DNA of 63,583 bases, counting the filler, from Perkinsus chesapeaki ATCC PRA-425 (Eukaryota; Protista; Perkinsozoa), in NCBI GenBank assembly GCA_013115145.1. It is 8 parts of 8 records of this genome, joined end to end, with 100 filler letters (N's around TTAATTAATTAA, not from the genome) between each part and the next. Parts side by side here need not be neighbours in the genome. Positions count along the whole stretch, not along the records: positions 1 to 15,434 come from JAAPAO010000726.1; 7 more parts are not named here. The stretch is one strand, 5' to 3'. The position numbers and the translations under genes are program-made. Below the pieces are notes generated by a model. That model worked only from the letters and a program-made list of their open reading frames with translations. It did not search any database and was not told the DNA's origin. This document shows positions 1 to 19,900 of this stretch, one piece after another (position 1 is the stretch's first letter; each line of letters opens with the position of its first letter).

Positions 1-1190
1 CATGATTCGACATGGGGGCCGCTTTTAGACCTCTGCCATGTTCCGATCTCTGTGATGTCTTCATTACGATATTGTCCACCCTAGCTGCTCTTCCAGCAGC
101 CCTATTTATCGATTCAACTTAGGTAATACTGTTATATTGTAAACCAGGCGAACCTACTGTGAGTAGGCTCGCACCTGCCAAAGCTGCAATGAGCTCCAGG
201 GATGATATATCCCCGCTCTCCGACTTCGCTCTGTCAGGTTTCTCGCTATTCCTCTTTATCAGTGCCCTCGCCTGACTAACTTGTCGGTAACATGATCAAT
301 CCGGCCACCGACTGTAGAGTAGCATCAGATACCACCACTTCTTTGGATTCCCCATCTTTAGCTACACATCCCCCTCCTAGTAGGGATGTTGGAGCGTTGG
401 AGCTTATACTAACGGGTTTCTTAAGGCAACGTAACCGAAAGTCCAAGCTTTGAGATGCCTCCGTGGTCGGGTTAATCCCTCGCAGACCTGTATGCTTCGC
501 TATGCAGCCTTCCATATAAGGGTTTCAGCCAAGGTCGAAATTGATAAATAATCTGAGCCATCCAGGCTGCATTACCAACTATAGATTGAAGCTCACTCAC
601 CGTCACCGCTTTGTGTTCACTATTCGGTCCCAGCAACCGGCTTATCTGAGATATCAGTTTCTTTGTCTACCTATAGAGACTGCTACTCTGCAACAACTCA
701 AATCCCACTGGAATTTAAGTAGCACCGGCGTCGCTGACGCACGCATCTAATGATACGACAAATCTGCCCCTACCACTTCATGTAATGATAATAACGATAC
801 TAGCCACCTCATCTCGAACTGTTAGGTAATTGACATAATTCCATCAAGATATGCCAAAGTACGTATAACGATCAAGACAAGCCCGCTGTATACTCTGACC
901 CACAAGAGGCCAGCCGGGCTCGAGCCAAATGGCAGCCTAGAATGGCATACCAGCGAAGGAGCTTTATCGTCCTTCGAAGGTATGAACTTCATACAGTACT
1001 TGCGTTCTGATTCCTTTATAGGTACATTCCTATGTGGTGCAGAGCAGTCCAATTCAACCTTAATCAGCTCATGGTTCGAAAGGCTCTCTCTGTCCTTCTC
1101 TCCAAGATAACGATGATAGGAGTGAATAAGGTGAGCAGCTGTGGCTAATCCCGAGAGTTGCAATATCTCAGGTGCTCTCACCATGGCGTT
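1..1190 (-). mobile_element. Decayed LTR-retrotransposon pol fragment (reverse transcriptase + RNase H), BEL/Pao-like
   Basis: ORF 822-1184 has RT motifs LDCSAPHRNVPI, RLPFGSSPA and AYLDGI (degenerate YxDD). Downstream on the same strand are VVVSDAT (RNase H D1, ORF 276-515) and ISSLELIAALAG (~130-190), like BEL/Pao ipRLELxA. Stops and frameshifts present. Confidence 0.75.
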
Positions 1191-1424
1191 AACTCCCGAG
1201 CGAAAAGAAATAATCCTCTCGCTCCATGATTCAGGTCATCCTCGCGTTCACTCCTATCACACGGCGCACTTTTCGGCCATCTTTCCGGGGCAGGTATGGG
1301 CTCCTCTATGCCTACACCCCCTTCTAGTACTGTATTTCATCAAGTGCTGCGGGCAGTTGCTGCGGCCGCAGCATTTTCTAAAAGTGTGCGGAAATGAAAG
1401 AGAATAAAGATGATAAATGAAAGA

Positions 1425-1695
1425 TTTTCTAAATGTACGAGATATGCTTGTGTGAAATAAGTGTGGATTGAGATCTTGGTGTATGAAATTGGGGTGAACG
1501 GAATGGAAGTGTATAAACTTTCAGTGTACTGAATGGTAGTGTACCGAGCTTATCGACATGAGATAATAGTGAACGTACTTTTGGTAGTCGAACTGCCCAT
1601 GATCTGGATAAGAGTAAACGAGCTGACTGTGTACGTGTTTCAAGCGATTGAGTTGAGTGTGTAAGTGTTTTATGCGTACCAATCGTTAACTTCGC
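1425..1695. mobile_element. Solo right arm of the 15-bp-periodic foldback element
   Basis: Clearly aligns with 3430-3727 (GTGTACG/GTGAACG motifs, shared end GTACCAATCGTTAAC). No left arm nearby. Confidence 0.8.
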
Positions 1696-2882
1696 CGAGC
1701 TGGACACTCATCCTATCGAAAATATCTCTGATATCTTCAAAAGTATTCAGCATTCGTCTTAAAGCCAAACGCTCAACACTCTTAGCATAAACATGGTTAT
1801 CGCGCAACCAAGATATCGTTGACTTGCTATCACTAATAACAACCACGCAAAGGGGCGTTCATGATCGACAGTATACTCTTCCAACAATTTGACAGTAAGC
1901 CTTGAAGAATACGCCACGCTTCTCGGCGATTGGAATGCCAAGCCGATTGTGCGTTAGGAAGAGGTTTCGCTCGAGAGGATTCAAATCGACCGAGGCGAAA
2001 CCTACAATAACCTACAATCCTATTCCCCTTTTCGCAACACAAGGACTGGTGATACAGAAATGGGCCTATCTCGAACCCGAGACCAGTAAACCGTGCTGTA
2101 ATGATGGTACTATTAGTTGGCTGTACCAAACCAAATCTGATCAGGTAAGGTCCTTATCTATTGAGCCAACTTGACTCAGCCAAGTAATACCATCAATGAG
2201 TGATCATAATAACTATCAGAAACTACAGCACAGAGCCAACCACCCGTACATCTTAAAAAAATCAGAATAAAACTCATAACTAACAGACTGAATGACGCTG
2301 ATACTAGCGTGAACTACACAACTGAGTACTTCAAACGAGCGGAGAGAAAGGGGTATCAGATTGTAATTTCATGCACTTAGTGCATTGCACTACAATCATA
2401 TTCCCCTTTTCGCAACACAAGGACTGGTGATACAGAAATGGGCCTATCTCGAACCCGAGACCAGTAAACCGTGCTGTAATGATGATAGTATCAGTTGGCT
2501 GTACCAAACCGAATCTGATCAGGTAAGGCCCTTATCTATTGAGCCAACTTGACTCAGCCAAGTAATACCATCAATGAGTGATCATAATAACTATCAGAAA
2601 CTACAGCACAGAGACAACCACCCAGTAGCTGGTCTCCTCGAGAAGGCCCTTTGCCATCATATACACCATCTTGAATAACTGTTCTCTCCTCTCAACCAGT
2701 TATACTTCACTTGAGTTGGGTCAGACCGTAACCATGACTCTACTGGTTTGGATTGCCTTCTCTGTAGCTTCCTTGTTCCCACCGGCTCAGAACTTAGCGT
2801 AGACCGAGTACAACTTATAGAGCCTATTACAGCGTTCACCTCACTCTTCTTTCCCTGAGCTGGCCGAGATTGATTCCATTGT
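1696..2882 (-). mobile_element. Second decayed LTR-element pol remnant (RNase H region)
   Basis: Frame-shifted translation gives VVISDSKSTISWL...VERLALRRML (RNase H DS motif), preceded by SRAKPLP...WHSNRREA. Interrupted by repeats. Confidence 0.5.
2012..2623. repeat. 234-bp direct repeat (2012-2245 and 2390-2623) around a 144-bp spacer
   Basis: Near-identical copies from CTACAATC(C/A)TATTCCCC to CAACCACCC. Confidence 0.95.
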
Positions 2883-3136
2883 GGGTGTGTAACGATTGGT
2901 ACACATAAATTACGTACACATGAAACTCGTACACGGAATTTTTGACTTTTGACTGGTACACCAAATTCCCGTACACTCACATCTCTGTCGACAAAAGGTG
3001 ATACACCAAAAATAGGTTCAGGGCCAAGTAGTACACAAAAATTCCGTTCATATGAGTGCCGTACACTAAGATTTGGTTCACTTTGATTTCGTACTCCTCG
3101 AACTCGTACACCCGATGGCTCGTACACTTATGCGAA

Positions 3137-3208
3137 TTTTTTTCAGTTCAGTAGGGAGATCACTAATTTGTTAATCCAAAGGTTGAGCGTTCAATCCCCA
3201 GAGGCCTG
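3137..3208 (+). pseudogene. Degenerate tRNA-derived sequence (Asn-like loop TTGTTAA)
   Basis: A-box-like CAGTTCAGTAGG, 7-nt loop with GTT at 3170-3172, AGGTT, B-box-like GTTCAATCCCC at 3189-3199. Stems do not pair well. Confidence 0.55.
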
Positions 3209-3283
3209 ATAACCGGCAAACTTTGTCTGTACGGCGGAGCAATTAGCACTTCTGGGGAGATCAATGCGACATTGCATTGTGTA

Positions 3284-3355
3284 GTCAGATTGCTCTAGTG
3301 GTATAAAGGCTATCTGACATGGGCAAGGTTCTAGGTTCGAATCTAACCCGGGGTA
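3284..3355 (+). pseudogene. Degenerate tRNA-derived sequence (Val-like spacing)
   Basis: CTAGTGGTATA (A box), CTGACAT loop, AAGGTT, GGTTCGAATC (B box) at canonical tRNA spacing. Stems decayed. Confidence 0.6.
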
Positions 3356-4322
3356 TTCTCAGTTCATGGGAGTGTGAGGATCTGAAAGCCTGGGGTGAGT
3401 AAGTTTAAAATTTTTGGAGTGTACGATATGAAAGTGTACGAGATATGCGTGTATGAAAAAAGTGTGCATTGAGATTTTGGTTTATGGAATGGGGGTGAAC
3501 GGAATGAAAGTGTACGAACTTTTGGTGTACTGAATGCAAGTGTACCGAGTTTATGGATACGAGATAATAGTGAACGTACTTTTGGTGGTCGAACTGCCGA
3601 TGATCTGAATAGGAGCGAACGAGCTGACTGTGTACGTGTTTCTAGCAATCGAGTTGAGTATGAATGTAATTTATGGAGATTGAACATTAAGTGTACGTGT
3701 TTTATGTGTACCAATCGTTAACATCCCAACAAAGGTGCTCTCGACAAGTCATTATCAACACCATCATCATTGAGCCCATTCGAAGAACAAAAGATACCAT
3801 GATGAGAGGGGTCGATAACAATACCAAGTTGAGTCATTCCTTCCCAACCAATAAATAGTTCGGGAGAAAGTGAAGGAACTATATGGAAGAACAAACCCTT
3901 CGAAGAGCCGTCGAAGCTTGCCACAAGCTCAATCCGGCCTTCCGAATCAACATAGTTACCATCAGCTAGTAACACCTAATGCTTCTTGTCGTCGCCAACT
4001 TTACATGGGCAACCTGCTAACTGCAGCGATTTCACCAAAGATGAACCGGTATAGTTGAGACTCGCACTAGAATCAAACAAAGCTTGCTTCCACAACTTTT
4101 CATTGCCAACTTTTTCCCGAAGGCTCGAATGAAAACAAATAGCAACTGGTCTCGCAGCGGGGCAGTTCTCCTCGGCCTCTTTCAAACACTCAGGCTCCTT
4201 CTGGACAACCATAGCGGCAGCTCTTGATGTCGTAGTAGAAGCAGGCCTAACAGTAGAATCATCACCCAAGCCAGATTTCTTCGGATCTGGTTTATCATGA
4301 GCTTTCGACCTAGCCTCTTCTT

Positions 4323-5071
4323 GGGGTGCACAGCGATTCGTCCATTATTGTTTCGTCCATGGCATGTTCCGTCCAGAATTGTTTCTCCCAGATCCCAGTT
4401 TATCCAGGATTGTTTCGTCCACTGTGATTGTGCTCGTTTCGTACACATTTGTTTCGTCCATGTAGGGTTTCGTCCACGATTGTTTCGTTTATGCTTGCTT
4501 CATGCAAAGATATGCTGACAATGCGTGTTTCGTACATGATCTTTTCGTCCAATAGCAATTCGTCCACGCTTGTTACATCCACAGAACATGCTGGGTCTAT
4601 TAGAAACCTGGTATGAGATAATAGATAGAATAAGTAGCCTTGGAATCACCCGAATGTTGATTATCCGATTGAGTGGGATATGCGGGGCGAAGCGCATGCT
4701 GTTTGGTACGACGCTTTCAAGCATAATCCGACGAGGAAAGTCTAACTTGCAGACGCGCGCCAGTGCAGTTGGTTAAACGGGTCATCTGCGGAACAGAAGG
4801 TCGTGAGTTCGATCCCCGGTGAGTGCTTGACCAAGATTCTCCGGGGTGGATGAAACGAGCATGCACGAATCGAAATATGCATGTACGAAGCGCATATGGA
4901 TGGAACGATCAGCGAAAATGGAAGAAACGGCGTGGACGAAAGAAGCATGGGGAAAAGCGCGTGGGTGAACTGCAAGTGGACGAAGTGAGCTGGAGGAAAC
5001 GCGCATGGACGAAACAATTTTGGACGGAACACACCGCGGACGAAAGAACACTGGATGAATGGCGACACCCC
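4323..5071. mobile_element. Complete foldback/MULE-like non-autonomous element (749 bp) with 9-bp TSD and tRNA-derived core
   Basis: Termini GGGGTG...CACCCC. Flanks CCTCTTCTT (4314-4322) and CCTCTTGTT (5072-5080). TTCGTCCA recurs every ~15 bp on the left and TGGACGAA on the right. Excision restores the gag-protease frame. Confidence 0.9.
4755..4827 (+). pseudogene. tRNA-derived core (Ile-like D and T regions), non-functional fold
   Basis: GCGCGCCAGTGCAGTTGGTTAAACG...AAGGTCGTGAGTTCGATCCCCGGTGAGTGC has tRNA length and A/B boxes. Anticodon loop lacks U33; T and acceptor stems are mismatched. Confidence 0.7.
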
Positions 5072-6129
5072 CCTCTTGTTGAGCTAGTTTAGGACGCTCA
5101 GACTTCAGATAGTCAGGCTGCCGACAATAATAGCAGACCTTCAAAGCGGACGGACTCGTACCAATGGGAGCTTTGGCATCTCCTGAAGCTGGTGCTGGAG
5201 CAGCTCTAGTGGGCGATGGGACCACAGTAACTGAATCAGGTGAACCATTAAGTGCACGCTTAAAAACTCGCTCTTCAGAGATCAAACGAGCAACCAAATC
5301 ATCTAGATTAGTAACACCAGTACCAATTGGATTTGCTGCGCTGAAAGCCGAATTCTTATTCCCGACCGAAGCGAATTGTATAGTAGATTGGTAATCATCA
5401 ATGTCATTACCAAAACATCTGGCCTCTTCTTGAGCATCTTGAAACCTTTGGCAAAAGGGGAGAGCTTCTCGTTCTTGCCTTGACGGAGCTGAAGCAAAGA
5501 GAGCCATGAATGAAGTTAACTAGCATCACCAAGACCATAAGCAATCAATAGACCAGTGGTCTAAGATCACTAACTTCACGTTTTAGCTCACGCTTCAATT
5601 CAGTATAAGTGGTTACTGCAACTGATGAACAACCTTTCTAGCCTCAGAGGTAATTTGACGTTTCATCATTTCCCTGTATTCCAAGGCAGACCAGCCTTCA
5701 TCAATAGCAGTGTCACGGAGAAAGATCAGCACTCTACTATAGAGCGAGAATCATCCTTCCCAGAGAGTTAACCTCCTTTAAGAAGATCAACATCATTAAC
5801 ACTCTTTTTAGCATCCCGTCGATCTTGGGAAGGTATAACACCTTCGTCGTCTGAGAAAGCCGGCAGTAAGTTACCTTAATCACAAGGCTCTACAAGAGAG
5901 TATTGATCTTTAGGAGAAGTAGTACCCGGTAAACCTTAACTGAATGAGAAGAAGGCTGAACTTTAGACTCAGTCGGAACTTCGTTAACGGTCGGTTAAGA
6001 CAGGGAAAGAGGGTTCAAAAATACTACACTTATCGTAGTTTGAGAACTTCACGGAAGTAATTTTTTGAGCCATGATAACCCGCTCATCTCTATCGGCGAT
6101 ACTATCTAATGTTACTAACTGTTCGCTTA

Positions 6130-8600
6130 CGACACGACGGAAATGCTTTCAGACCCTTAGCAAGTTCTTCGACCCTTTGGATATCTGAATAGAAGCAGTC
6201 TCGAAGAAGAGGTATCTTTTGCGAGAGGCAGCTTGTGAGACAGCCCATTGGGGTTCCCAGGATGTACCCAATAATGTTATGCTAGATATCAAAGTCCTCC
6301 TCAACGCCAACCTACCACCACAACCACGCTTTACGAATTCCCGCCCCGGTATAGTTGTCTTTTGCGACGCAGCTGGAGCTGGTTGTATCTGCGCAGATGC
6401 ACGTGCCAGAGCTAGTGGTAGGCGAATAATTGCTCGGCAATGTTCACTTAACCCATCATGGTCTGTTGCTCGCTGAGCACTATGTGGTGACCACATCGTG
6501 GTCTCCCTCTAGCAGCAGATTTGATGTCTAACATCTTGAGAGAGGCAGATTGTGGTGGAGTGATCGATGTCGACCGTTCTGGGCGCGACCATAGCCGGAT
6601 CGATATTAGCTATTAGCACGCAGGCGCATATCGGGGGATATCCCCCCCTACAGTTGCTCTTATCGGAGCCGTATTCTCTGATAGCGCCCGTTAACACACC
6701 ATAGTCTGTTGCGTTAATGAGAAACACTTGCACAAGTCATAAAATGGTGCCCAGACCCAGGAATGTGTGTTCCTCAGAAGCTTTTGCTTTTCCTTGTGCC
6801 CGAATGAGTGTTTCCCCGAGCTCCCTGGAGTTTTTACACCAACCGCTAAGAATTGCACAAGCCATAGGCCCAGTTCTTCAAGAAGTTGCTGCTGAGTTCA
6901 AAAACACTGATGAGATAGAACGTTATGAAATATGTGAAGGCCTTATCTATAAAGTTGGTAATGTGTCCCTGGACGGCGTACTACTCATCAAATCGTTGTA
7001 CCAAATGATCGCCGAGATGCACAAGCATTGGTAGTTTAACTACTTAACTACCGTAGTTAAGTGGGTTCACGATAAGCATGGTGGTCATCCTGGTCGTACG
7101 ACTCTTGCAAGATGGGTTTGGCGAAGCTTCTATTGGAGACGAGTTGAGTCAACGCAGTTGTCAACTGCCAGTTGGCACTGCTGTGAGAGTTGTGAATCGG
7201 GACTGCGAAGGCTGTCAAGCAAGGAGGTTAGCTGCCAACAAACTACAAGTACAGTCACCAAGGCCACCTGGTTGCTCGGTACAGTATGAACCTTTCGCCA
7301 TAGATTATTTTGATGTTATGGGTCCGTATCAGTTGTCGAAGTCGGAAGCGGACACTAACACTAAGGTCTATATCTTCACCTTGTCATGCCACTCTAGGAA
7401 GTTCGTGAAGTGTGAGGCTGCTCATGACAAATCTGGTTACAGTGCCTCACAAGCGTTGTTTAAGATGTTATCTGATGAAGGCCCAGTACCACTACTAGTG
7501 GTAGACCAGGGTCTCAATGTCCCAGAGGTTATGTCTGTTGCCGATGAGTGGAATGCTATTGTAGTAGCTGCTCCTCCATGAGGAGAAGAACTCCGTGGGT
7601 GGGGGGAACGTGCTCACCGAGATGTCCATGCCGTCCTACGAGGTTGTCTTTGGGATCTATCAGCAGAGCGCACACTACCCAATGAAGATGAGTTCCTTCG
7701 TCTGGTTAGTAGAGCCGTTACTATTGTCAATATGACGCCTTACATTGGTCGTTCTCCACTCTGTCCTTTGTTGGTATGCAGAGGACACAGTCGTATGATT
7801 AGTGACTTGAATGCAGAAGCGGAGGCTGAGAGTATCAGAAAGGCTATCTTAGACGGCTTAGACGGCCCCCAACTTGGTGGACTGAAGAATTGGCCAAGCA
7901 CTATCGAGAACAAATTGATGAAGGACATATGTTCACTTTGAAGGAACTTGCTGACGTCTGGGGGATGCGACGACGTGATGTTAGAAGCAAGCTTCTGAAC
8001 CGCGTACAGCGACATGCGAGTAGAGATCTAGAAGAAGGTTCAACCGTATATCGTTGGCGCCCAAATTTGGGATGGTTTGGTAAACTTAATAGTGGCTGGC
8101 ATGCAGCGGTTTTGGTGAGAAAATCAAGCAGTAGTGTTTGCATTGCAAACTTCGCAAGACCGCCTACCTAATGGGAAAGAGACGACTGAGAGCGTATCGA
8201 ACCTCAGGCCGGCGAGAGTGTGCCGGTAACGGCATTTGTGCGATTGTTATGTTATACAACTTATTTCTGTGCTGATGCTATTCTGTGACAGCATGTCTGT
8301 CCAGAATTCTTTGTTGTTTTCCGCGCTCATTTGTCTACCATAATTGTGTGCTAAGATTCCTAGTGCCCAGCTAGTGGACTCGGTCCGTAACTCATGAGTA
8401 GTAAAAAGTTTTTAAGCTTCTGCGATATCGACTTCATCACCTATGAACCACTTGTATTATCTTCAGATCACGGAAACGAGTCTTGAGTTATCTATTATTG
8501 TAATAATAACACCGTCATACTGTCGTCAGTCACTGACCTGACTTGACTCGAAGGTGACTCGTACTTTGAGTAGTATCACTCCTCAATTTGCTATTGGTAA
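6130..8600 (+). mobile_element. Decayed BEL/Pao-like pol 3' half (RNase H + integrase), probable LTR at ~8220-8600
   Basis: IVVFCDAAG and SWSVAR.AL (ORF 6219-6476), VFSDSA, HGGHPGRTTLARWVWRSFYW..CEGC (H2C2), FDVMGPY / VVDQG / RGWGER (DDE), C-terminal LEEGSTVYRW...GKLNSGW. Frameshifts and an in-frame TGA at 7579. The LTR call is tentative. Confidence 0.8.
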
Positions 8601-8921
8601 GTTAGTAGTACTAACAAAAGATGATATTCCAAGATGAAGCTGCTGCTGCTCTCTAATGATGTTTGTGATGATGATGATGATGATGATAATTATTTATATA
8701 CTACTTCTTATCAACATTGTTGGAGGAAGGTATATTGTCAATAACTCTTATGATGATGAGCAGCAATACATAGGTAAAAAGGTAATACCAATTTGGTATT
8801 ACCAAACACCGAAACCACCACCACCATCATGACCACTACTGCCATTTACAACAACAAGTGTGTTATCATATTCTTTGATTATAGCAATATAACTATATAA
8901 TTATTATTATCATTCCTATTC

Positions 8922-10590
8922 TTATTGAGTATTATTATTTAATGTTGTTGTTTCCATTTGAGATAATAATGCTGTATTAACTGCTGATGCTAGATAACCA
9001 ACTTGTAATTTAGTATCAGCTATAATATATTCATGCATTGCTGCTATAGCTACTCTAGCATCACAAGCACGGGAATATCTAATAATACAACTAGTAGTGT
9101 GTAATAATAACAACAACAATAATAATAATACATAATATTATTATTACATAACAAATGCAAATCCTCGTGGTCTTCCAGTATATGGTGATTTAGCTATCTC
9201 AATTGATTGTATATCACCAAATGGAGAAAATAATTTTCGAAGTTCTGATTCTTGAAGATGTATTAATGGTCCTTGTAGATTACCAATATACCTATACAGA
9301 TATTTATTATAACTATTAATCATTATATTCCCATTACGCCCATTACACTCTCATTGGTAAATCTTGTTGTTGATTCTGTACTACACGTGCCGCTTCAGCT
9401 GCACGATTCTTTTCAGCTTGTGATGCTTGTACTAATAATAATAAGACCTATTTATTACTATTACTATTACTACTACTTATTACTTCGTATTGGATGACCC
9501 ATTAATGGCTGACCATTACAAGCTAATGCTTTTAATATTGTTTCAGGTGTATAAAATTCAACATATGCTACACCTTTGGAACGATTAGTACCTAATAATA
9601 ACAACAACTTATTAATAATAACAACTTATTATTATTATTACGTGGATCACGTATAACTTGTACATCTCGTACTTTACCAGCATTTTGACTAAATAATGAT
9701 TAATGCTTATTATTATGATTATCCACACTAATAATACTACTACCTCATAAATACATATACTTCCCTTTCTGTACATTTAGGATGTATTCCCATAACCATT
9801 ACTGTACAATCATCTCTATGCGCTTGTTGTACCATACGTGCTCTTTCATCATTATTAATACCTCCTCCCACTCCAGCTACTGCTGCTGCTGTTGATGATG
9901 ATGATTTACCCCTCCTTCTTTTAACTTCATCATCATCATCGTCATTGTCGACATTGTTATATCGTCTTGGCCGTCTACTACTACTTCTATTACGTGACGA
10001 TGATGATCTTTTATAATATCGATCACTACTATCATAATTACCATTATCGCGGCGGTCATGTGTTAACTTATTATCATTATTATCTATATCATAATAATCA
10101 ACTAATAATGCTGCCCTACTATAATACGCTTTATATTACAATATCCGCCATCCCCATCACCGTCACTACCACCTTGTTGTTGTTGATGATGTTGATGATG
10201 TTGATAGTATTCATTATCGTTGTTAGATTGTTGTTCTATTACTCCTCCCCTTCTTCCTCCTCCTCGAGAAGATATTTCATTATTCCCTATAAACAACAAC
10301 AAAAAGTAGTGATAGTAGTAGTAGTAGACGATAATAACAACTTATTCGACGGTCGGTGGTATCATTCAATAATGTTACATACTTACTAGGTCTATACTAC
10401 TACAAGAAGAAGAGGTGGAATTATTATTATTATTACATGTTGATGATCTTCTCCTTCCTATTCTCCCTTCCTCCTCCTCTCCTCCCCTTCTTATACCATC
10501 ATTACCACCACCACCCTGCATACCACCACCTTCTTGTTGTTGACGATCCATCAACTCTTCTACTTGATCGAAATCTAGATCATCATCCAT
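8922..10590 (-). CDS. RBM39: RBM39/RBM23 (CAPER)-like RS/RRM splicing factor, multi-exon
   Basis: Spliced translation: RS-rich N-terminus, RRM1 (GKVRDVQVIRDPRSGRSKGVAYVEF...QASQAEKNRAA), RRM2 (VYIGNL...LFSPFGDI...RGFAFV). No third (UHM) domain seen. Confidence 0.8.
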
Positions 10591-10760
10591 ACTTATTACT
10601 ATTAAATAATATATAACTTGAATAATAATTAAATACCCATTAATAATAATACAATAATAATAAATAATAGAAACATTATAATATTGTTAGCAGTAAAGAG
10701 CAGCAGCAGAAACAATAATAATAACAACATCAGGTGTTATTCTTATTCTGTTTATTTATT

Positions 10761-11653
10761 CTAATTTACTTTATTATTATTATCATTATTATTCCTACTA
10801 CTACTACAAGTAGTATAACAATTAAGCCTGATTATATTATTATACCATATATCATAATTTCCTATTGCAATTGCTTTACGTGCTTCATCAAATAATCTAT
10901 CTAACATTATTATATTATTTCTACATACTAATTGTGGACCAAGTAATTCACCACATTTATATAAATGATGTATCTATTATTAATAAGGGTAATACAAGCT
11001 ATGTAGAGTATATAATCATTATTATTACATATGATAGAGTATAATGCCCCTGCTGCTGCCCCTCAGTATCATCATTATCTTCATGTAATGTTATATTACT
11101 AGCATATGACTTTGTATTATTGATAAGTGATATATCCGACTTTACTCGAATTATACTAATAAAAATAATAAGTAGTAATAAATAATAACAACAATAATAA
11201 TACCAAATATTATTACCAGCATGGTTTTAAAGGTTTCCATTCATTATTATCTATATCATTATTATTATAATCTATTATAATATTTTGTGAATCTGATAAT
11301 ATATAGTTCATTATTATTACTATCATATATCATCATCACTATTACCTGGTATATCCCAATTCAATAATAAACCATCATTTGCCATATCAAATACGAATGA
11401 TGTATCAATAATATCTATACCACATTTGATACTGTGTAATATTTCATGTAAACAACAACAATAACAATATTTTGGTATATATATAGTATCATAATCACCA
11501 TTATTATTATCTAATAATACTGTATAATAACAATATTAATAATACCAATATTATTACTTTTAATTATATTACAATATACCTCGTTACATGATATACAATC
11601 ATCAATTAATACAGTCATCATCTTCCCTACTACTGATTTATCATCACCACCAC

Positions 11654-11704
<51 letters not shown>

Positions 11705-12959
11705 TCTTCTTCTTCCTTCCTTTTCCTTCCTCTTTCTGTGATACTACTTTAATAACCTTTCGTAGTGATAATGGTATACCTATTATTAATCATTATTATT
11801 AATAACTATTATTATTTAATTACATCGTAACTCTTCATTATTATTACATATACTTGCATTAATAAGCTTATTACGTAATGATGGTGGTTGTGCATACGAT
11901 GAGCTTATACCACCAATCCATTTACCACCATTATTATTATTGTTCCATTTACAATATTTATTACGAAATTCATAATCCTATAATAATACATACATTTATC
12001 TCAATATCTCTATTATTATAACTGCTACCCTCCATCCTTGACAATTCTTCATTATATAGTATGATGATTTATCTTGTGATATATTATTTATTAATCTAAT
12101 AGCATCATTAATTACCACATAATAATATATTCCCCGTTCCCCCACCCATAGTACTCATTTTCCCAATAATCATGACATTCTTTAGTCCTATTTAACCTTC
12201 TTTTACCAATATCCTTTCCTCCTGCTACTACAGGTAACTAATAATTATATATTATATCATCAACTTAATAATATATTACATTCTCAGATAACATAACAAT
12301 AATATCAACATCATTTATATTATTTATTATATTACTATATAATTTACTATTAATACGTTGTCTACCCGAAGCAGAATCGATAATTAAACCTTTATTTTTA
12401 TCACCATTATATATATTACAATCATTTTGCATCATACTTATCATAATCATATAATTATCAGGTATCTGATAATCTGATTATTGTCTAAATTATATTGGAT
12501 ATTATTATTACCATTAATAAACCATTACGTGTTTCACCTTTATATTCTTTATTATATTTTTCTAATAATTCTCTAATACATAATAAATCACCAATATAAC
12601 TAATATTAATAATATAATTATAATATAATTATAATATAATTATAATATAATTATTATTACAATGATATTATTCTACTATTATTTGATGATGTTATTGATT
12701 TAATATCATTATATGTTAACCTTATTGGTGCTAATAGCTATATATTATATTATATTATAATATTGTTATTACCTGCTTTATTGGTTGATATAGTATATGT
12801 TGGTGTTAATATATTCCTATTATTATCATTATATATATAACCACATCTAGCAACATCCACATCCACACTATTATTAACACTTTTATCTAATAATAATATG
12901 TATCAACAATACAACAATAACAACAATATCTTACCAATCTTAAATCTTATACCGCCCAT
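10761..12959 (-). CDS. QTRT2: Queuine tRNA-ribosyltransferase family protein, accessory-subunit-like, multi-exon
   Basis: Exons give ARCGYI...ILTPTY, LHEILHSIKCGIDIIDTSF, WKPLKPC and IHHLYKCGELLGPQL...EARKAI, all TGT-family motifs. Subunit assignment is inference. Confidence 0.7.
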
Positions 12960-13078
12960 CGTAATAAAGGTGGAACCTAATATTAATAGATTACAATGGC
13001 GGGCGCCGGCGCGTTTACAATGCTGCCAGGCCGATGGTGGTGGTGTGTTGTTGAAGTGGTGTTGTTGTTGAAGTGGTT

Positions 13079-14891
13079 ATGATTAGATTTATTGGTGGTA
13101 AAGATGTAATAAATAATATGAATATATTTAAAAACATTATAATTGATAATTATGGTGGTATTATTGATAATACGTAATAATATTTCTATCATTTGTATTA
13201 TTTATTAATTAGGTATAATAATACATTATATAATAATAAACTTATTATTATAGTCCGACCTAAACAGAAATTTAATAATAATGAATTTAATGATATTATA
13301 AATTATATTAATAATGGTGGTTCATTATTAATATTAAGTAATGAAGGGGGGGATGGATTATACAATAGTAATATTAATTATTTATTAAATAATTACGATA
13401 TTAATATTAATAATAATACAGTAATTGGTACTATACATAATAATAATTATCATCCTAAAGAGGTAATAATATTTATACTATTTATATTATTCATAATAGG
13501 TTATTATAAAATATAATAAGTATAAATTTATATACCCATATGGATGTACATTAGATAATAGTAATAGAGATTATAATAAAATATTGTTAAATTCTGGTAA
13601 TTTATCATATCCTATTAATAAACCAATATCAATAATAAATAATAATGGTAATGGTAAAATATGTGTTATTGGTAGTCATATGTTATTTAATGATAATTAT
13701 ATTAATAAAGAGGATAATACTTTATTAGCAGTAATAATAGTAATACTACTACTACTACTACTACTTATATTTCGAATGTCAGGATATTATTCTAAAATAC
13801 CTATTAAATAATACCGATAAAGATTATGACAATGGAATGATAGAGTAGTATTATTATCAATTAGTATTATAGTTTAATCATCAGCTTAATTAGGTTTAAT
13901 AATAATATATATAATAATATGAATAATATTAGCATACCAAATACAAGATTATTAGCTGATATGTTAAAATCATGCTTACAACATGATCAACAATACAGCA
14001 CTGAGCAGCAGCAGCAGCAGCTGAGCGGCAGTGGCAGTGGTAGAGTCGAAGGAATATATAATAATATAATGATGGTAATATATGTTGTATTGTATAATTA
14101 TTTATTATAGGATAATTTACCAATAGTATTAAATACATATAATAAACTAATAAGAAGTATAGGAGGGAAAAGTAATATATTATCATCATGACCATCTTGA
14201 TTTAATCAAGATTGTTGTTGTTGTTATTGTTGTTAAGGTGGTGGTTATATTGTAAACGGTGGTGGTAAGTATAATAATAATACTAAAAGGGTTTTAAGTG
14301 TTATAAAACCACATTTTATAACTATTAATGGTTTGATAAATAATACATATAAATTTACATCATCACCTGCATTAATACCACCATTATTATATAATATATA
14401 CAATAATGGAGAATCAGGGCACCACCAGCAACAGCAGCAGCAACAGTCAATGGATAATAATAATCAGTATCATCATCAGCAGCAGTATCATCAGCCTAAT
14501 TTAGAAATGTAATATTGTTTTATTGATATTATTGATTGTTGTTAAAATGGCAATATTATTAAATAGGTATGATTTGGAAGATGAGCTATCATCATATTCA
14601 CAAAGGCTTAATACTTTAATAATTAATAAATATAATAATATAATACAATTTGATGAGAATAATAATAACATTGGTAATTTTATTAAAGACGCATGCTCCT
14701 CTATTAATGATGATAATATGATAATGAGGGTAAATTATAAATTAGAATATAATAATGTTAGTATGCAACACCACCACCACCATGCACATATAACTGATAA
14801 TAATAATAATGGTATATATAAATATGATACAATTAAATATAAATATATGTTATATAATATATATAAATATATAAGTGATTATAAAACATGA
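13079..14891 (+). CDS. IFT52: Intraflagellar transport protein 52
   Basis: PKQKF...NGGSLLILSNEGG...NINYLL...HPKE; FIYPYGCTL; GKICVIGS...KEDN; PNTRLLADMLKSCLQ; PNLEMYDLEDELSS...RL. Confidence 0.9.
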
Positions 14892-15186
14892 AGAATTGAA
14901 TGGGCGAAGGCGGAGGCGGAGGCGGAGGCGGTATGATAGGATATAAATAAAAAGTGTAACATTATTTAGTGTATTCATTTATTTATTTTGGGTTGTTATT
15001 ATTAATGTTAATATAAGTAGTCATTATTACTAATGATTATTAATACCAATAATACTACTACAACAACAACTTGTAGTAGTAATAATAATAATACTATATT
15101 CTTTCCAACACTTAATAAGGATGCTGGAGCATTTGAGTTTGAACAAAGGTAATAATAATAACAAGAAGAAGAAGAAGTTTATTTTT

Positions 15187-15434
15187 ATATATTGTCATTC
15201 TTGTCATTGTTGTCATTGTTGTTATTGTTGTTATTGTTGTTATTGTTGTTATTGTTGTTATTGTTGTTATGGTTGTTATTGTTGTTATTGTTGTTATTGT
15301 TGTTATTGTTGTTATGGTTGTTATTGTTGTTATTGTTGTCATTGTTGTTATTGTTGTTATTGTTGTTATTGTTGTTATTGTTGTTATTGTTGTTATTGTT
15401 GTTATTGTTGTTATTGTTGTTATTGTTGTTATTG
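15187..15434. repeat. (TTGTTATTG)n compound microsatellite at contig end
   Basis: Direct reading; it generates the poly-L, poly-V/I and poly-C/Y ORFs. Confidence 0.97.
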
Positions 15435-15534
15435 NNNNNNNNNNNNNNNNNNNNNNNNNNNNNNNNNNNNNNNNNNNNTTAATTAATTAANNNNNNNNNN
15501 NNNNNNNNNNNNNNNNNNNNNNNNNNNNNNNNNN
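15435..15534. other. Assembly linker N44-TTAATTAATTAA-N44; same 12-mer at 26933, 36533, 40177, 41638, 48349, 49464
   Basis: Identical 12-mer with stops in all six frames, embedded in N runs. Neighbouring segments are not genomically adjacent. Confidence 0.98.
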
Positions 15535-15535
15535 A

Positions 15536-15595
15536 TATTCCAACCGTCTTGTCGATCTCGCTGTTCACATGAGCAAGGTCGATGCTGCTCAGTAA
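15536..15595 (+). CDS. GAPDH: 3' end of glyceraldehyde-3-phosphate dehydrogenase (truncated by contig start)
   Basis: YSNRLVDLAVHMSKVDAAQ* matches the conserved GAPDH C-terminus. Confidence 0.85.
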   Translation, partial: YSNRLVDLAVHMSKVDAAQ

Positions 15596-15996
15596 GTTTT
15601 CTTACTTACTTTTTTTCTGATATTCAGAGATATATTTGGCTGAGAGCCAGTTTTCCGCAAGCTTATGTTTATTTTGTTTGTAACTTGTACACAATACTAG
15701 TTAAGCCAATTCGACCGATGCGTCACCACTGGTGACAGCCACCAGAAGCAACGCGACTGGGCGGCGCCTACTCGGTATGGGTGTCTTAGTGTGAGAGAGG
15801 GATCGGCAGAGTGTCGATCGACAAAGTAATCTTGCGTGAAGTAAATTATCCAGTACTGCCTCAACCATGTTCATCATGGTCCAATGGTGACATCATGTGG
15901 CTCACATGCAGTCATTGTTTGACAGTGACGGTCACGTCACGTGACATGACCCCCTGACTGGATGAAGCCCCATCGATAGATGTCAATCACCCTCTA

Positions 15997-16377
15997 ATGA
16001 TTCCGTCTAACACATTACTGCTTGGAGCCGTTGCCACTATTATGATTTTCGTGATGCTTGGGTGCAGCGTAATTGGTAATTATCATGGTGAGAACTCTGG
16101 ATTCACCTTTGACTGGCATGTGACGAGCGGCTCCGTGAAAATGATCACAACTGATATCAGGGTCAGGGGACCTAATGGCGAAGTTGGTAGCTGCAACGGC
16201 GTCACGTTGGAAAATGGCATCAACTTTCGGACTGACTGTCTCGTCAAGCTATCTGAAAAGACCGGTGTACCCAATGGTAACTGGGACGTGATCATCGGCA
16301 GCAGACCAGAGGCTACCATAGGATACATCCTCCTGCAAATTGGTGCTGATTTTTACATAACCTCAGACAAGCAGTAA
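15997..16377 (+). CDS. Small putative secreted protein (126 aa), unknown family
   Basis: ATG start, hydrophobic N-terminus (LLLGAVATIMIFVMLGC), single exon, two further Cys. Confidence 0.6.
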   Translation: MIPSNTLLLGAVATIMIFVMLGCSVIGNYHGENSGFTFDWHVTSGSVKMITTDIRVRGPNGEVGSCNGVTLENGINFRTDCLVKLSEKTGVPNGNWDVIIGSRPEATIGYILLQIGADFYITSDKQ

Positions 16378-16989
16378 CGGTTGTTTTTTCACTGGCTAAG
16401 CTCAACCTCCTCACCCGCTCACCTCTACAGTGGTAGTTGCAACTTGTACAGTGTTAGCGGCCGGCATATTGCTGTGTATTTGTCCCTAAGCATTGTGAAA
16501 GAGCTGCTAGGCTTGTGCAACATCTTTTTGCTATGGTAAGTGAGGTAATGTTTGTCTAACAATGTCTACCTTCATATCAGATATAGTATATCTGCCCCAA
16601 TCACTGTAGTACGTGCCCACATTTGGACGTCTACTTCTAACAATTGTGCTGCTGCTACGGGAATCCCGAGCGCCATGAGAACGGTTGGAAACATAAGAGC
16701 TTTCTTTCGATATAGCACTGCGCCTTGCGTTACTAGTGTGTGCTAGAGGGTCTACCGTAGTGAACAATGTTCAGAGAACATGGTAAGGATTATCCCCACT
16801 GGACATCCAACGTAGCATTCAGCCTCCCGCAATACTTTAATTTTGCACATGAATATCGTACATGAGCAGCTAGCCATTCACACAATTATCATAGCAGTAC
16901 CTCGCAGTTGCTGACGTTACACGGTGTAACTTACACCAAAATCGCCGCTGTCGGGAAATTTAAGTATATGCACTTTAGTCCTGAGTCGT

Positions 16990-19900
16990 GATGTCACATT
17001 CAACTTCTCTATCCCCAACTCCGAGGACTAATCGGATGTCGCCGAGGTTGAGGAGGCAATTTGGCGTTCCTCCATCACCGTTGATGCACACTTCCGATCA
17101 TGGCTTCCCGTATGCGGTAGCCGATCAAAAGCGATATCATCTTATTGCCTTTGTGTTCGGCAAACACTCAGGCAGTCATCCAAGCCATCAGATAGAATCA
17201 TGCTTCAAAGAACACGGAGTTATCAGAGCAGATATCACGCGATCGAAGTTCTAGAGAGACGTAGACGAGAGAGACAGATTGAGCGGTTAGCTCTTCGCAG
17301 CATGGAACGGCTAGGTGCTACTGCTGCGTCGCACATGCTGCTCATCAATCTGCATTCATCGTAGATTCCCCGTCTACACGTTCCATTGCAGTGGATGAGC
17401 TTCAGCACATAATTGGTAGATGGTGCTTGATAGACTCGAGGAAGAATGACAGAGAAGCAGTCCTTCGACTGTTACTGAGCCCTCATAATATGAAAGGGCA
17501 CAGCAAAGGAGCGATTCGAGTATCGAATGGCAAATATATAAATAACTGTCATAGTGTGAAAAATTCTGAATTTTTGCAAAATCCTGATGATTCAAGATAC
17601 TTATTTGGGCCTCACCATAAAGCATATGAAGCTAGCCTGTGTCAGGAGCACGTAAGCCTGTTGGGATATGTAGTTGAGCACAACCTCGCAATCAATCCGA
17701 CTTGCTTCGTCGAGGACGACAGCCTGTTGTTACGCATCATGGATGTCCTTATAAAGGCCTTGGAGATTCCTGAAACTGAAGATGTAGGAAAGCGAACATC
17801 ATCGTGCTTACACGGTGTGACAGGGTTAGATACTGCCTTAGGTCGTATCCCAAACTGTTGTGGAGATCTGGCATAATATAACAGGAAAATCTGCTCAAGA
17901 GACGTGGAAGCTCTACTATGATATAGTGGCTGGTAGACTGTTTAGAGTGTTGAAGAAACACAACAGAGTCGGCCTCAATACAGAAGCACGCCGTCAGTGA
18001 GAAAAGCGCCGTAGACTACGGCCCGTAGTGTTCCCGGTAGACCTAAGTGGTTTCATCGTTCAGATTGTTCCTTGTGATAGCGCACTTCACTCGAGCCCTC
18101 GTCGAATCGGTTTCCAGCATACAGTCAAGAGCGGTCACTCGTATACTCGTGAAGCATTCTGAGGAACTACAAGTACTCCTTAGAGAAAGTAACCAAAAGT
18201 TTCCGCCGCAATGGCGTATTCACCAGTGGTGCACTGTCACACGCCTCAATAAGTATATTACGATAGAGGCATATCATAGATTGTTACGTTTACATATATT
18301 CAACATAGTGGGATACGCATATCATACATTTAACATTGATGGGAGCGTAAGACGTGGTTATCATCCGAACTGAATTCAACTCAGTGAATTGGTTTTTTTA
18401 TACCGGCTCCGAGCGCGGTCAAATCATCACTGCGAACTCGTTGAAGTCTTTCTGAAAGACTCTTTAATCTCGCAAGTTGTGAGCCACAACATAGCTCAGG
18501 CTCTTGAAGAACATCGGTGGTCTGAGACTATTACTAGTAGCGTCAGAAGTAGAGACACATGGTCTCATGATGGGGATCCGACTATCAGTTTCCTTTAGTT
18601 TCTTGGATCCACCCTAGTCGTCTATGTCAGGTCGTAGCCCGGCCGAGTTGGAGCTTTCCATATCGGGCTTAGCCGAATACTTGGCTGCCGGCTACAGCTT
18701 GCCGCGTCCGGGCCTCGTATTTCTCGGAAGAGCATGTCTAGATGTTATAAGCGGATCACACGAACAGCCTATGAAGCCGCAGCTAGCTCGATCTCTGGCA
18801 TTCGCTGCAACTGTATGCCTTGGCCATCTTGCCAAGTTTGGTAAGTTGAGCTGGCTATGTCATTCATCCGTGAGACTATCGGGATCGGAGCATAAACTGT
18901 GCTCTAAGCATTGCACTCCCTGGGATGTCCGGTCTCGATCGAATCGCGAACATCGGTTTTCATAACATGTTGCGGATCCTTGTTTCAGCTAACTACGATG
19001 CAATGCCTACAGGAGAGGTGTTGACAGTTTTAGAGAGAGACAACCTATCACTTTACGAGCTCACCCGGTCCAATCCTCGACTAAGGCAGGCAATAGCGTT
19101 TGCGAGGCAAGCGTGGGCGTTAGCAGCGAGACACCGAGGAAGCATCGGAGTGGAAGAAAGCGTCACAGAGTCCCCAAGACGAACGCGGTGTTACGAAAAT
19201 ATGTACGTCCCGAAGGTCATGAAAAATAGATACATCATAGTTGTTAAAAGTTTTATCTTGAAACATAGTATGAGATAGTCTGATATTGTTACCAACGTTA
19301 TGTTAATAAGATTTTTGTTTAACTTTACAGGTTCTCTCTGAGGGGCAACGAGGAGGCCCTGGTCAAATCGCTATTCTCATCCCAGTTTATTTCTCCCGAG
19401 GAAGGTCACGGCATGACAATGACTGAGGGTGCTGGCGCGGCGCCAGGCGCGCAGCTAGCGAATCGTGTTAGCGGATGGGTAGACGATTCTGTACAGAGTA
19501 TAGCTGCTGCCATGCTACCCAACGATGATAAGCGCACCGACGACGAAAAATCAAGCGCGCGGCAAACTGTGAATTCTGGACATGCTAGCGTTACGGAAGA
19601 GTTAATTGTTACCAATGCACAGGAGCATAAGCTAAGCGGTTTTCCGAGTGAGACTAGCTCAAGAAGTGACTTTCGAGAAAGAGAAAGCGGGGATGAATCA
19701 TTTCATGGAGATCAGATTATGCAAGGCAGTCCAAGAGGTATTGGTACACCTCATCTCAGCGAGGGGCTAGTCGAAAATACACAAATCAGCAAAGCGCAAG
19801 ACATAGACCTTCCTGGTATTATGCTCGAGTCATTGCACTCGAATTTGAGCTCTAGAAGACTCTCCAGTCGGAAAGAGTCTGCTGTGGAAGCTATCGTGGA

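Follow-up and report, generated by a model that had tools for sequence, protein, structure and literature searches.

The FB element of Drosophila generates a target duplication of 9 bp; for Foldback/Mutator-like (MULE) elements at large the length is about 9 bp (8-11), and their autonomous copies encode a MULE/Phantom DDE transposase. The ends of Merlin elements go with a DDE_Tnp_IS1595 transposase. In hAT elements such as maize Ac/Ds, subterminal regions of ~240 bp are studded with short transposase-binding motifs; the duplication is 8 bp and the inverted repeats are short, starting with YARNG. Dada elements generate duplications of 6-7 bp. FB and Tm1 of the root-knot nematode, both of the Foldback/Mutator type, have arms of homogenised tandem repeats (10, 20 or 31 bp), short non-coding copies, a variable loop and a linked MULE/Phantom-type transposase (PMC3169594). 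Merlin elements are defined by a 5'-GG at the ends, duplications of 8 or 9 bp and inverted repeats 24-462 bp long, and some families also have tandem repeats in their interior. In Perkinsus marinus and P. olseni, ORFs for Merlin-like transposases have been reported, and no inverted repeats were found around them (PMC8101967). Captured fragments of host genes, namely protein-coding exons, are amplified by the non-autonomous inverted-repeat elements Pack-MULE/Pack-TIR (PMC8277862). Dada transposons are physically associated with tRNA sequence; their insertion sites lie within tRNA or snRNA genes, halves of which come to flank them (PMC3706591).

The window analysed here is the whole stretch of 63,583 nucleotides from P. 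chesapeaki ATCC PRA-425 (GCA_013115145.1), a parasite of oysters and clams. Two non-coding foldback DNA transposons of 750-850 bp, E1 (2883-3727) and E2 (4323-5071), are present on JAAPAO010000726.1, both inserted among dead retrotransposons that are nested together. Their structure is foldback-type and MITE-like, though longer than most MITEs. The features are as follows.

1431-1697, no strand assigned: solo right arm of E1 type, truncated on its inner side (similarity and periodicity)
2883-3142, plus strand: E1 left arm, terminus GGGTGTGTAACGATT, ~17 units of 15 bp with (T)CGTACAC
3143-3403, plus strand: E1 core, varying among copies (sequence, read contigs)
3145-3200, plus strand: E1a, weak tRNA-like stretch with a GTT 'anticodon' and B-box-like GCGTTCAATCC
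3281-3355, plus strand: E1b, decayed and probably tRNA-derived segment with A-box-like TTGCTCTAGTGG, loop CTGACAT and B box GGTTCGAATCT
3404-3727, minus strand: E1 right arm, ~21 units of 15 bp with GTGTACG, terminus ...CCAATCGTTAACATCCC
3728-5507, minus strand: host of E2, a degraded gag/protease-like reading frame (CYYC knuckle remnant, FDSSAS; by eye)
4314-4322, no strand assigned: left copy of the E2 target-site duplication, CCTCTTCTT (sequence)
4323-4590, plus strand: E2 left arm, terminus GGGGTGCACAGCGATT, ~18 units of 15 bp with TTCGTCCA (some TTCGTACA)
4591-4845, plus strand: E2 core, in fewer copies than the arms (depth, joints)
4754-4833, plus strand: E2 segment, tRNA-derived as judged by blastn and local alignment, ending in ACCA
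4846-5071, minus strand: E2 right arm, ~15 units with TGGACGAA, terminus ...GGCGACACCCC
5072-5080, no strand assigned: right copy of the E2 target-site duplication, CCTCTTGTT (sequence)
6301-8387, plus strand: Bel/Pao-type retrotransposon remnant with pol, integrase and part of the 3' LTR (P. olseni homologues)

The arms of E1 and E2 are long and inverted, are built of short tandem units and fold back into hairpins, as in Foldback elements. Tandem-unit arms, short non-coding copies and a variable loop are shared with FB and Tm1; a 9-bp duplication such as FB has is seen at E2, with one mismatch, but not at E1. Unlike FB and Tm1, E1 and E2 have no linked MULE/Phantom-type transposase, their unit is strictly 15 bp with 8 bp conserved, and the inner parts of their arms are only ~70% complementary. 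The terminal definition of Merlin also describes the Perkinsus family (GGG ends, long inverted repeats, 8-9 bp duplication). Thus, of the fit to Mutator/Foldback in the original prediction, the foldback-type modular arms hold but the assignment is not established, since such ends, inverted repeats and duplication also define Merlin. In the Perkinsus Merlin-like contigs (PMC8101967 supplement) the arm motif was counted at background level only, a weak negative because the contig stretches are short. The subterminal motif arrays recall hAT, and an 8-bp duplication fits the P. olseni copy O1; however, the termini of E1 and E2 are GGG and not YARNG, and the E2 duplication is 9 bp. E2 is also comparable to Pack-MULEs, although its cargo is a fragment of a tRNA gene, a putative capture, and not exons. 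In contrast to Dada, the tRNA piece is internal to E2, the flanks of which form a 261-aa gag/protease-like frame. Neither a transposase nor a long copy was found within the window or in three retrieved Perkinsus loci. Because no transposase was found, Mutator/Foldback, Merlin and hAT all stand as candidate superfamilies.

Termini and 15-bp motif arrays of the arms

The terminal inverted repeats of E1 lie at 2890-2919/3691-3720 (93%) and those of E2 at 4333-4390/5006-5063 (79%). Past these terminal 30-58 nt, complementarity of the arms is only ~67-80%. When folded as single-stranded DNA, both E1 and E2 formed long imperfect hairpins (z -5.75 and -7.72, respectively). The ends of the arms are side-specific, GGGTGT.TAACGATT on the left and GGGATGTT.ACG on the right; GGG termini, of the overall form GGG(T/A/G)TG, are common to E1, E2, O1, O2 and B. 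The solo arm is 86% identical to the E1 right arm (1431-1674 against 3432-3675). A left arm for it was not found anywhere upstream, and no further motif clusters were seen within the window. A similarity between the flank of the solo arm and the left flank of E1, GAGCTGG(A/C)C, was judged to be due to chance.

In each 15-bp unit, 8 bp are kept as the motif TCGT[A/C]CA(C) while a 7-bp spacer drifts, over arms of ~230-320 bp, and the orientation of the motif is inverted between left and right arms. In autocorrelation, lag 15 ranked first or second in all five arms (z 5.1-7.0); in the solo arm lag 30 leads, with z of 6.4 and 5.1 for lags 30 and 15. The motifs are spaced by 15, 30, 45 and 60. Each arm has 8-15 motif matches against 0.3-2.0 in shuffles, and the arms hold 16 of the 18 forward and 12 of the 14 reverse exact matches to CGTMCA within the window. 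There is little information in the spacer columns, and conservation is limited to the motif whether the arms of one element, E1 and E2, or the two species are compared. As the arms are ~67-80% complementary inside, the motif is better kept than hairpin pairing. From this pattern of conservation the motif is predicted to be a probable transposase-binding site. The argument that a 15-bp period places sites on alternate helical faces is arithmetic and not evidence.

The original prediction was thus accurate as to E1, E2 and a solo arm (1425-1695 there, 1431-1697 here), which are borne out by inverted repeats, periodic motifs and GGG ends, and as to 15-bp-periodic inverted arrays, confirmed by the lag-15 z of 5-7 and the excess of motifs over shuffles. 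The predicted match of 15/22 between the termini of the two elements is obtained when E2 is read from 4324.

Target duplications, copy number and relatives

The two 9-bp copies of the E2 target-site duplication are identical at 8 of 9 positions. Removal of E2 and 9 bp in silico gave a 261-codon open frame spanning the junction; excision of E2 restores the reading phase, as expected for one interrupted host frame. Restoration of a frame upon excision is a 1-in-3 event. The host frame is annotated as FOL47_009925, and the annotated protein includes exons built from E2 arms. Protein searches with the host ORFs matched only the window's own proteins. The stretch 6301-8387 is homologous to P. olseni pol genes with RVT_1, Pao_retrotransp and Integrase_H2C2; atlas features there match integrases and are taken as leads only. 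Pfam returned nothing on the retroelement pieces, and their identity rests on the P. olseni relatives together with the atlas leads.

At E1, no target duplication was found when sought at 0-12 bp. At its left end a read contig departs from the window exactly at 2882/2883, and at its right end heterogeneous loose ends start directly past 3727 in three of four runs (X1, X4, X5). Contigs with 100% identity cover the junctions 3700-4362 and 5002-5400 in two independent samples. The only contig listed across the left flank of E1 has 6-8 differences and exits the window at the E1 boundary. In view of this exit and of the missing duplication, the two flanks of E1 may come from different loci, brought together by inter-copy recombination or by an assembly mis-join.

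Copy numbers were taken from summed contig depths, a rough measure, in run X2, where the single-copy depth is ~100. The values were 12,800-45,800 for E1 arms, 10,400-17,200 for the E1 core (~100-170x single copy), 2,300-4,400 for E2 arms (23-44x) and 560-1,200 for the E2 core, with the tRNA piece at ~6x. A large share of E1-type copies carry the E1 core.

The same family is present in P. olseni, with a complete copy of 497 bp, O1, at L131:996-1492. Its duplication, TTCTGATT, is 8 bp and perfect, or 9 bp with one mismatch, and O1 is complete without any tRNA-like centre. Coreless copies are present in both P. chesapeaki and P. olseni. The proposal of a non-autonomous DNA transposon family is supported by the duplications, the frame-compatible excision, the copy number, the sharp ends and this P. 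olseni sister family.

Origin of the cores and alternative explanations

Part of the E1 core is bracketed by an imperfect direct repeat of 13-15 nt, CAGTTCAGTAGGGAG (3143-3157) and CAGTTCATGGGAG (3360-3372). In read contigs, other E1 copies diverge at 3261/3265 and 3403/3404, and in a coreless variant 3142 is joined to the right arm via 18 nt. A tRNA covariance model of our own was built from 21 E. coli tRNAs. With this model E1a scored 5.6 bits (E 7.4), and its score of 11 against Perkinsus tRNA-Val equals the background maximum, that is, noise level. E1b, followed on its 3' side by a T5 run at 3411-3415, aligned with P. marinus tRNA-Val over 63 nt (score 13, z 5.2, p ~0.0025), a score exceeding all of ~9,600 background windows. 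These values suggest that E1b is probably derived from a tRNA. As a tRNA, it was undetected by ARAGORN, Rfam and our own model.

The E2 core matched by blastn the sole tRNA gene within 45 kb of Perkinsus DNA. Positions 4794-4818 agree with tRNA-Val positions 39-64, over the T arm, at 23 of 25; the 3' half of the segment is well kept, and decay has affected the 5' half and the anticodon arm. In local alignment the segment scored 40 against 15.8 +/- 2.1 in shuffles, the best of the whole window (z 10.7 against Perkinsus tRNA-Val). Judged from these alignments, the E2 segment is truly tRNA-derived, yet it is not a tRNA. ARAGORN found 0 tRNAs, and with relaxed thresholds the E2 match surfaced only alongside nine noise matches. 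Rfam gave no tRNA match on the whole window or on either core, for the cores even at E<=10. Our own model also ranked E2 best in the window, at only 9.8 bits (E 0.54) as compared with 54.7 bits for a real Perkinsus tRNA-Val; this score was discounted as support because noise in control Perkinsus DNA reached 9.9 bits. Other E2-type copies skip the tRNA-like part through the joints 4740->4859, 4785->4846 and 4800->4952. Blastn of the cores against phage genomes with annotated tRNAs gave no match. The tRNA-like centres that had been proposed are thus upheld at E2 (23/25, z ~11) and moderately at E1b (z 5.2), but not at E1a.

Several readings of these centres were weighed. In the original prediction, Pol III promoters (A/B boxes) are captured again and again, and might serve transcription, hairpin RNA or insulation; the reading weighed here adds that such captures would benefit the family and explain its success. 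In keeping with this, the three tRNA-like segments share one strand relative to the arms, a genuine Perkinsus tRNA-Val has exactly the B box of E2, GAGTTCGATCC, E1b has an A-box-like site ~40 nt upstream of its B box and the T5 run 55 nt downstream, and the E1 core has reached ~100-170x single-copy depth. However, coreless copies transpose, as O1 with its perfect duplication illustrates; judged by depth, most E2-type copies lack the tRNA piece, and unrelated sequence takes its place in other copies; and the segments have decayed (no more than 9.8 bits), only that of E2 being clearly tRNA-derived. The E1 core was held by no listed RNA run, a weak negative because only two small RNA runs are listed (~5 million letters apiece, of unrecorded library type). 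As the cores vary, coreless copies exist in both species and the tRNA segments do not fold as tRNAs, the idea that Pol III promoters are captured repeatedly and to a purpose is unsupported, and we consider it improbable. It is similarly doubtful that the tRNA modules keep working B boxes and usable A boxes, giving ~100 TFIIIC/Pol III entry sites scattered genome-wide, and that the family gains by repeated acquisition; if true, such sites could yield silencing-feeding hairpin transcripts or chromatin boundaries.

Alternatively, the centres could be independent insertions of a tRNA-derived SINE, or of a tRNA retro-pseudogene, into the loop of a coreless ancestor, after which DNA transposition would have amplified the composite; such a reading competes with capture only over where the cargo came from. 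The direct repeat bracketing 3158-3359, the single CAGTTCAGTACGGA of the coreless E1 variant at the place of that repeat, the ACCA end of the E2 segment, like that of a processed tRNA, and another low-copy repeat with box-like motifs in the window (2012-2245/2390-2623) are consistent with such an origin. Against it, an A-rich or simple-repeat tail is absent, the putative insert of E1 has its better tRNA-like part at the 3' end and not at the head, and the coreless variant also lacks 58 nt past the repeat and is thus not a clean empty site; nor did the rest of the window or a further 45 kb of Perkinsus DNA yield a matching SINE. The whole elements, with inverted repeats, a fixed 8-9 bp duplication and tail-less cores, do not resemble SINEs, which have a tRNA-like head at the 5' end and variable duplications of their own but no inverted repeats. 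SINE insertion is thus regarded as a possible, though rather unlikely, source of the centres. That the elements are not transposons at all, but a 15-bp satellite duplicated locally in inverted orientation, or a product of misassembly, could be argued from E1, which has no target duplication and a left junction unconfirmed by listed contigs. The duplications of E2 and O1, the two junctions recovered at 100% identity in independent samples, the sharp ends with heterogeneous flanks and the same termini in a second species make this hardly credible.

A foldback-type family with probably dispensable cargo

Very probably, E1 and E2 represent two subfamilies within a single non-autonomous cut-and-paste family of Perkinsus with motif arms, the cores being dispensable, partly tRNA-derived cargo. 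Most likely, a transposase provided in trans would bind at the many motifs, pair both arms, excise the element and reinsert it through a staggered cut of 8-9 bp. We infer this mobilisation in trans and the binding of protein to the motif, since neither an autonomous copy nor a transposase was found. The centres would be dispensable; in some lineages decayed pieces of tRNA genes may have been acquired via gap-repair capture or the landing of a tRNA-derived SINE in the centre. Such cargo would then be copied passively as the lineage amplified, the E1 core to ~100 or more copies. The E1 core may also confer a benefit.

Spurious ORFs of the arms, used as protein queries for more copies, gave no matches. 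In metagenome scans the terminus pattern had 0 matches, and a three-motif pattern had at least 120, none of which resembled E1 or E2 in anything but the pattern. No published description of this transposon family was found in the literature searched for Perkinsus or the assembly accession. The family is new, but it is a fairly ordinary foldback-type transposon, and on present evidence no new mechanism is involved.

Transposons of Perkinsus are poorly described, and this family is abundant, occurs in at least two Perkinsus species, breaks assemblies and corrupts gene models. Its strict 15-bp motif array is a clean substrate, provided by nature, on which the cognate transposase could be sought together with its binding code. 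The tRNA remnants show that inverted-repeat elements of this lineage acquire and multiply fragments of Pol III genes.

Periodic arms and copies in a second species

The two foldback elements of the 15,434-bp Perkinsus chesapeaki record JAAPAO010000726.1 (assembly GCA_013115145.1), E1 (2883-3727) and E2 (4323-5071), carry terminal inverted repeats at 2890-2919/3691-3720 (93%) and 4333-4390/5006-5063 (79%), respectively, and a solo arm at 1431-1674 is 86% identical to the right arm of E1. In autocorrelation, lag 15 ranked first or second in all five arms (z 5.1-7.0) and lag 30 was also high. Exact motifs are spaced at 15, 30, 45 or 60, with a few slips of 1-3 nt, and 8-15 motif matches were observed per arm as against 0.3-2.0 in shuffles. 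Nearly all of the exact CGT[A/C]CA sites in the record lie inside the arms (16 of 18 forward, 12 of 14 reverse), and the columns between motifs hold little information. The motif reads (T)CGTACAC in E1 and TTCGTCCA, with some TTCGTACA, in E2; the two forms are a single motif, TCGT[A/C]CA. Aligned from GGGT, the termini of E1 and E2 have 15 of 22 bases in common. The description of the arms in the original prediction is correct.

An exhaustive protein search with a neighbouring integrase ORF as query led to a P. olseni contig that carries the same foldback family.

Features of P. olseni contig L131 (JABANP010000777.1)
996-1492: copy O1, complete, 497 bp, perfect flanking TTCTGATT
end at 2950: copy O2, 5'-truncated
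left arm from 4673: copy B, arm interrupted by a Bel/Pao retrotransposon LTR
4886-10950: Bel/Pao-type retrotransposon with RVT_1 and Integrase_H2C2; LTR pieces at 4952-5008 and 10728-10782

The arms of these copies also have a 15-bp period (z 5.5-14). The left end GGGTGT(G/A)TAACGATT and the right end GGGATGTT(A/C)ACG are common to the P. olseni copies and E1, as is, in both species, a right-arm unit 4 that does not have the motif (CAATCTCCA / CATATCTCCA). The Bel/Pao element, which sits in a foldback left arm, is a homologue of window positions 6301-8387; foldback elements and retrotransposons are mutually nested in both species. At 961-995 of the contig, a 10-nt exact match (GGTCGCGAGT) to the T-arm region of Perkinsus tRNA-Val ends about 25 bp upstream of the O1 insertion site; with a score of 12, the noise ceiling, it is probably due to chance.

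Both E1 and E2, taken as single-stranded DNA, fold back into hairpins that are long but imperfect (z -5.75 and -7.72). Across species the motif and termini are kept while the spacers vary, and past the terminal 30-58 nt the arms of one element are only ~67-80% complementary. This pattern suggests that the motifs may be sites for protein binding, more than that a perfect hairpin has been selected for. The 15-bp array of putative binding sites is notably regular.

Copy number, junctions and host region

E2 lies between CCTCTTCTT (4314-4322) and CCTCTTGTT (5072-5080), and its in silico loss together with one 9-bp copy leaves a 261-codon minus-strand open frame spanning the junction. A phase match alone has a 1-in-3 chance, so the weight rests on the long open stretch on either side of E2. 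Logan contigs of two samples, four DNA runs in all, were aligned to 1300-5400. In sequencing run X2, where single-copy depth is ~100, depth reached 12,800-45,800 over the arms and 10,400-17,200 over the core of E1, and 2,300-4,400 and 560-1,200, respectively, in E2. Past 3727, numerous contigs have loose ends that conflict (agreement 0.39-0.49); with the exit of the left-flank contig exactly at 2882/2883, this is the picture given by a repeat whose copies end against many different flanking sequences. Junctions 3700-4362 and 5002-5400 have contig cover without differences. The arms and the mobility of the family are well supported; no earlier description of it was found in the literature searched.

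E1 is the weaker case: no target duplication was found for it at any offset, and its in silico excision leaves a frame of ~155 codons open. The sole contig listed for 2594-2882, present in all four runs at single-copy depth, differs at 6-8 positions (e.g. 2757, 2788, 2796), departs exactly at the E1 boundary and continues for 4.67 kb unlike the window, whose own version of 2594-2882 was not seen among the contigs of the four runs. The mismatch could stem from a second haplotype or a paralogue, or from faulty assembly at E1. Because the duplication is missing and the left contig is both mismatched and departs at the boundary, the E1 flanks may belong to two separate loci, brought together when dispersed copies recombined or when the assembly was mis-joined inside the 845-bp high-copy repeat.

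Other features of JAAPAO010000726.1
2012-2245 and 2390-2623: 234-bp unit in two direct copies, 97% identical, 144 bp between them, ~4-5x single-copy depth
3976-5507, minus strand: FOL47_009925, annotated hypothetical protein, 271 aa, sole named protein of the record
9144-9323, minus strand: RRM
13193-13516 and 13584-13811: IFT52 GIFT domain exons (E 2.5e-23 and 3.6e-11)
15192-15434: TTGTTATTG x27

FOL47_009925 is a chimeric gene model. Exon 1 extends 38 nt into the right arm of E2, a 27-aa mini-exon (4615-4535) spans the end of the E2 left arm and the start of the core, and the remainder is a retrotransposon-like remnant. The 234-bp repeats hold A-box-/B-box-like motifs on the minus strand, are called by ARAGORN at relaxed thresholds only, and may be a further small repeat, either Pol III-related or of miniature LTR type. 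Positions 1-8480 (G+C 45.7%) are a nest of dead retroelements. The switch to 8481-15434 (26.7%, whereas three other Perkinsus loci have 44-51%) is sharp; this half, with the RRM and IFT52 matches, has many codon-like repeats (poly-N/Q/H/D) and no annotated gene. One explanation is an unusual compartment rich in AT, the other a join that is chimeric or due to contamination.

Superfamily affiliation

The Mutator/Foldback affiliation first proposed fits the long modular arms and the ~9-bp duplication; the published definition of Merlin elements (5'-GG ends, 8-9 bp duplications, inverted repeats as long as 462 bp and, in some families, internal tandem repeats; PMC8101967) matches the family equally well. 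In P. marinus and P. olseni the same study describes Merlin-like ORFs whose ends were not recognisable, and the TCGT[A/C]CA motif occurs only at background counts in its Perkinsus contigs, so these counts do not link the family to Merlin. With hAT elements the family has the subterminal-motif architecture in common, whereas the termini differ. As a rough judgement, MULE/Foldback is a tentative assignment, a little more likely than Merlin or than some other superfamily, the last two being about equal. In supplement file 45 of that study (Ptychodera flava Merlin-hit contigs, ~400 kb), one strand has 75 occurrences of CGTACAC and the other 11, possibly an unrelated tandem repeat.

Origin and role of the tRNA-like centres

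tRNA-like segments
3145-3200: E1a, E1 core
3281-3355: E1b, E1 core
4754-4833: E2 segment

ARAGORN called no tRNA in the E1 and E2 centres, and Rfam likewise reported none when each core was submitted alone at E<=10. Our own covariance model, trained on 21 E. coli tRNAs, scored the E2 segment at 9.8 bits (E 0.54) and E1a at 5.6 bits, as against 54.7 bits for a genuine P. marinus tRNA-Val(TAC) (L133:4164-4236); across 45 kb of Perkinsus DNA, background scores rose as high as 9.9 bits. The centres thus fail all of these structural tests. By sequence, E2 4794-4818 matches P. marinus tRNA-Val positions 39-64 at 23 of 25 (anticodon-stem 3' strand, variable loop and T arm), and in blastn the match falls on the sole tRNA gene within 45 kb of Perkinsus DNA. 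Its local alignment, by far the best in the record, scores 40 against 15.8 +/- 2.1 for shuffled sequence; a softer scoring scheme gives z 10.7. The alignment of E1b to tRNA-Val spans 63 nt and has a single gap (score 13, z 5.2); it exceeds all ~9,600 background windows from the record and the Perkinsus loci. E1a is no higher than the noise ceiling. Judged on sequence similarity, the E2 centre is certainly tRNA-derived and E1b probably so, while for E1a this is unproven; the cores proposed as tRNA-like are upheld to that extent. The E2 B box is that of the real tRNA-Val; given a D arm of another type, no amino-acid identity is assigned.

That the family repeatedly captures Pol III promoters was not supported: O1 transposed without a tRNA piece, the cores vary, and in X2 the bin holding the E2 tRNA-like part (4725-4861) has ~6x single-copy depth against 23-44x for the arms. 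A read variant passes from 3142 to the right-arm start via 18 nt (CAGTTCAGTACGGAATGA), further E1 copies part from the window sequence at 3261/3265 and 3403/3404, and further E2 copies skip 4741-4858 or have 12 nt in its place. The E1 core is common, with roughly a third to a half of the depth of E1-type copies. The figure shows amplification of one sublineage that carries the core, not the reason for it. No RNA run holding the E1 core was listed, among just two small RNA runs. An imperfect direct repeat (3143-3157 / 3360-3372) round part of the E1 core, single in the core-less variant, hints at insertion into the loop, though that variant falls short of a clean empty site. The elements form a real and abundant Perkinsus family of non-autonomous DNA transposons of foldback type, and the evidence says that its tRNA pieces are passengers, carried in some lineages.
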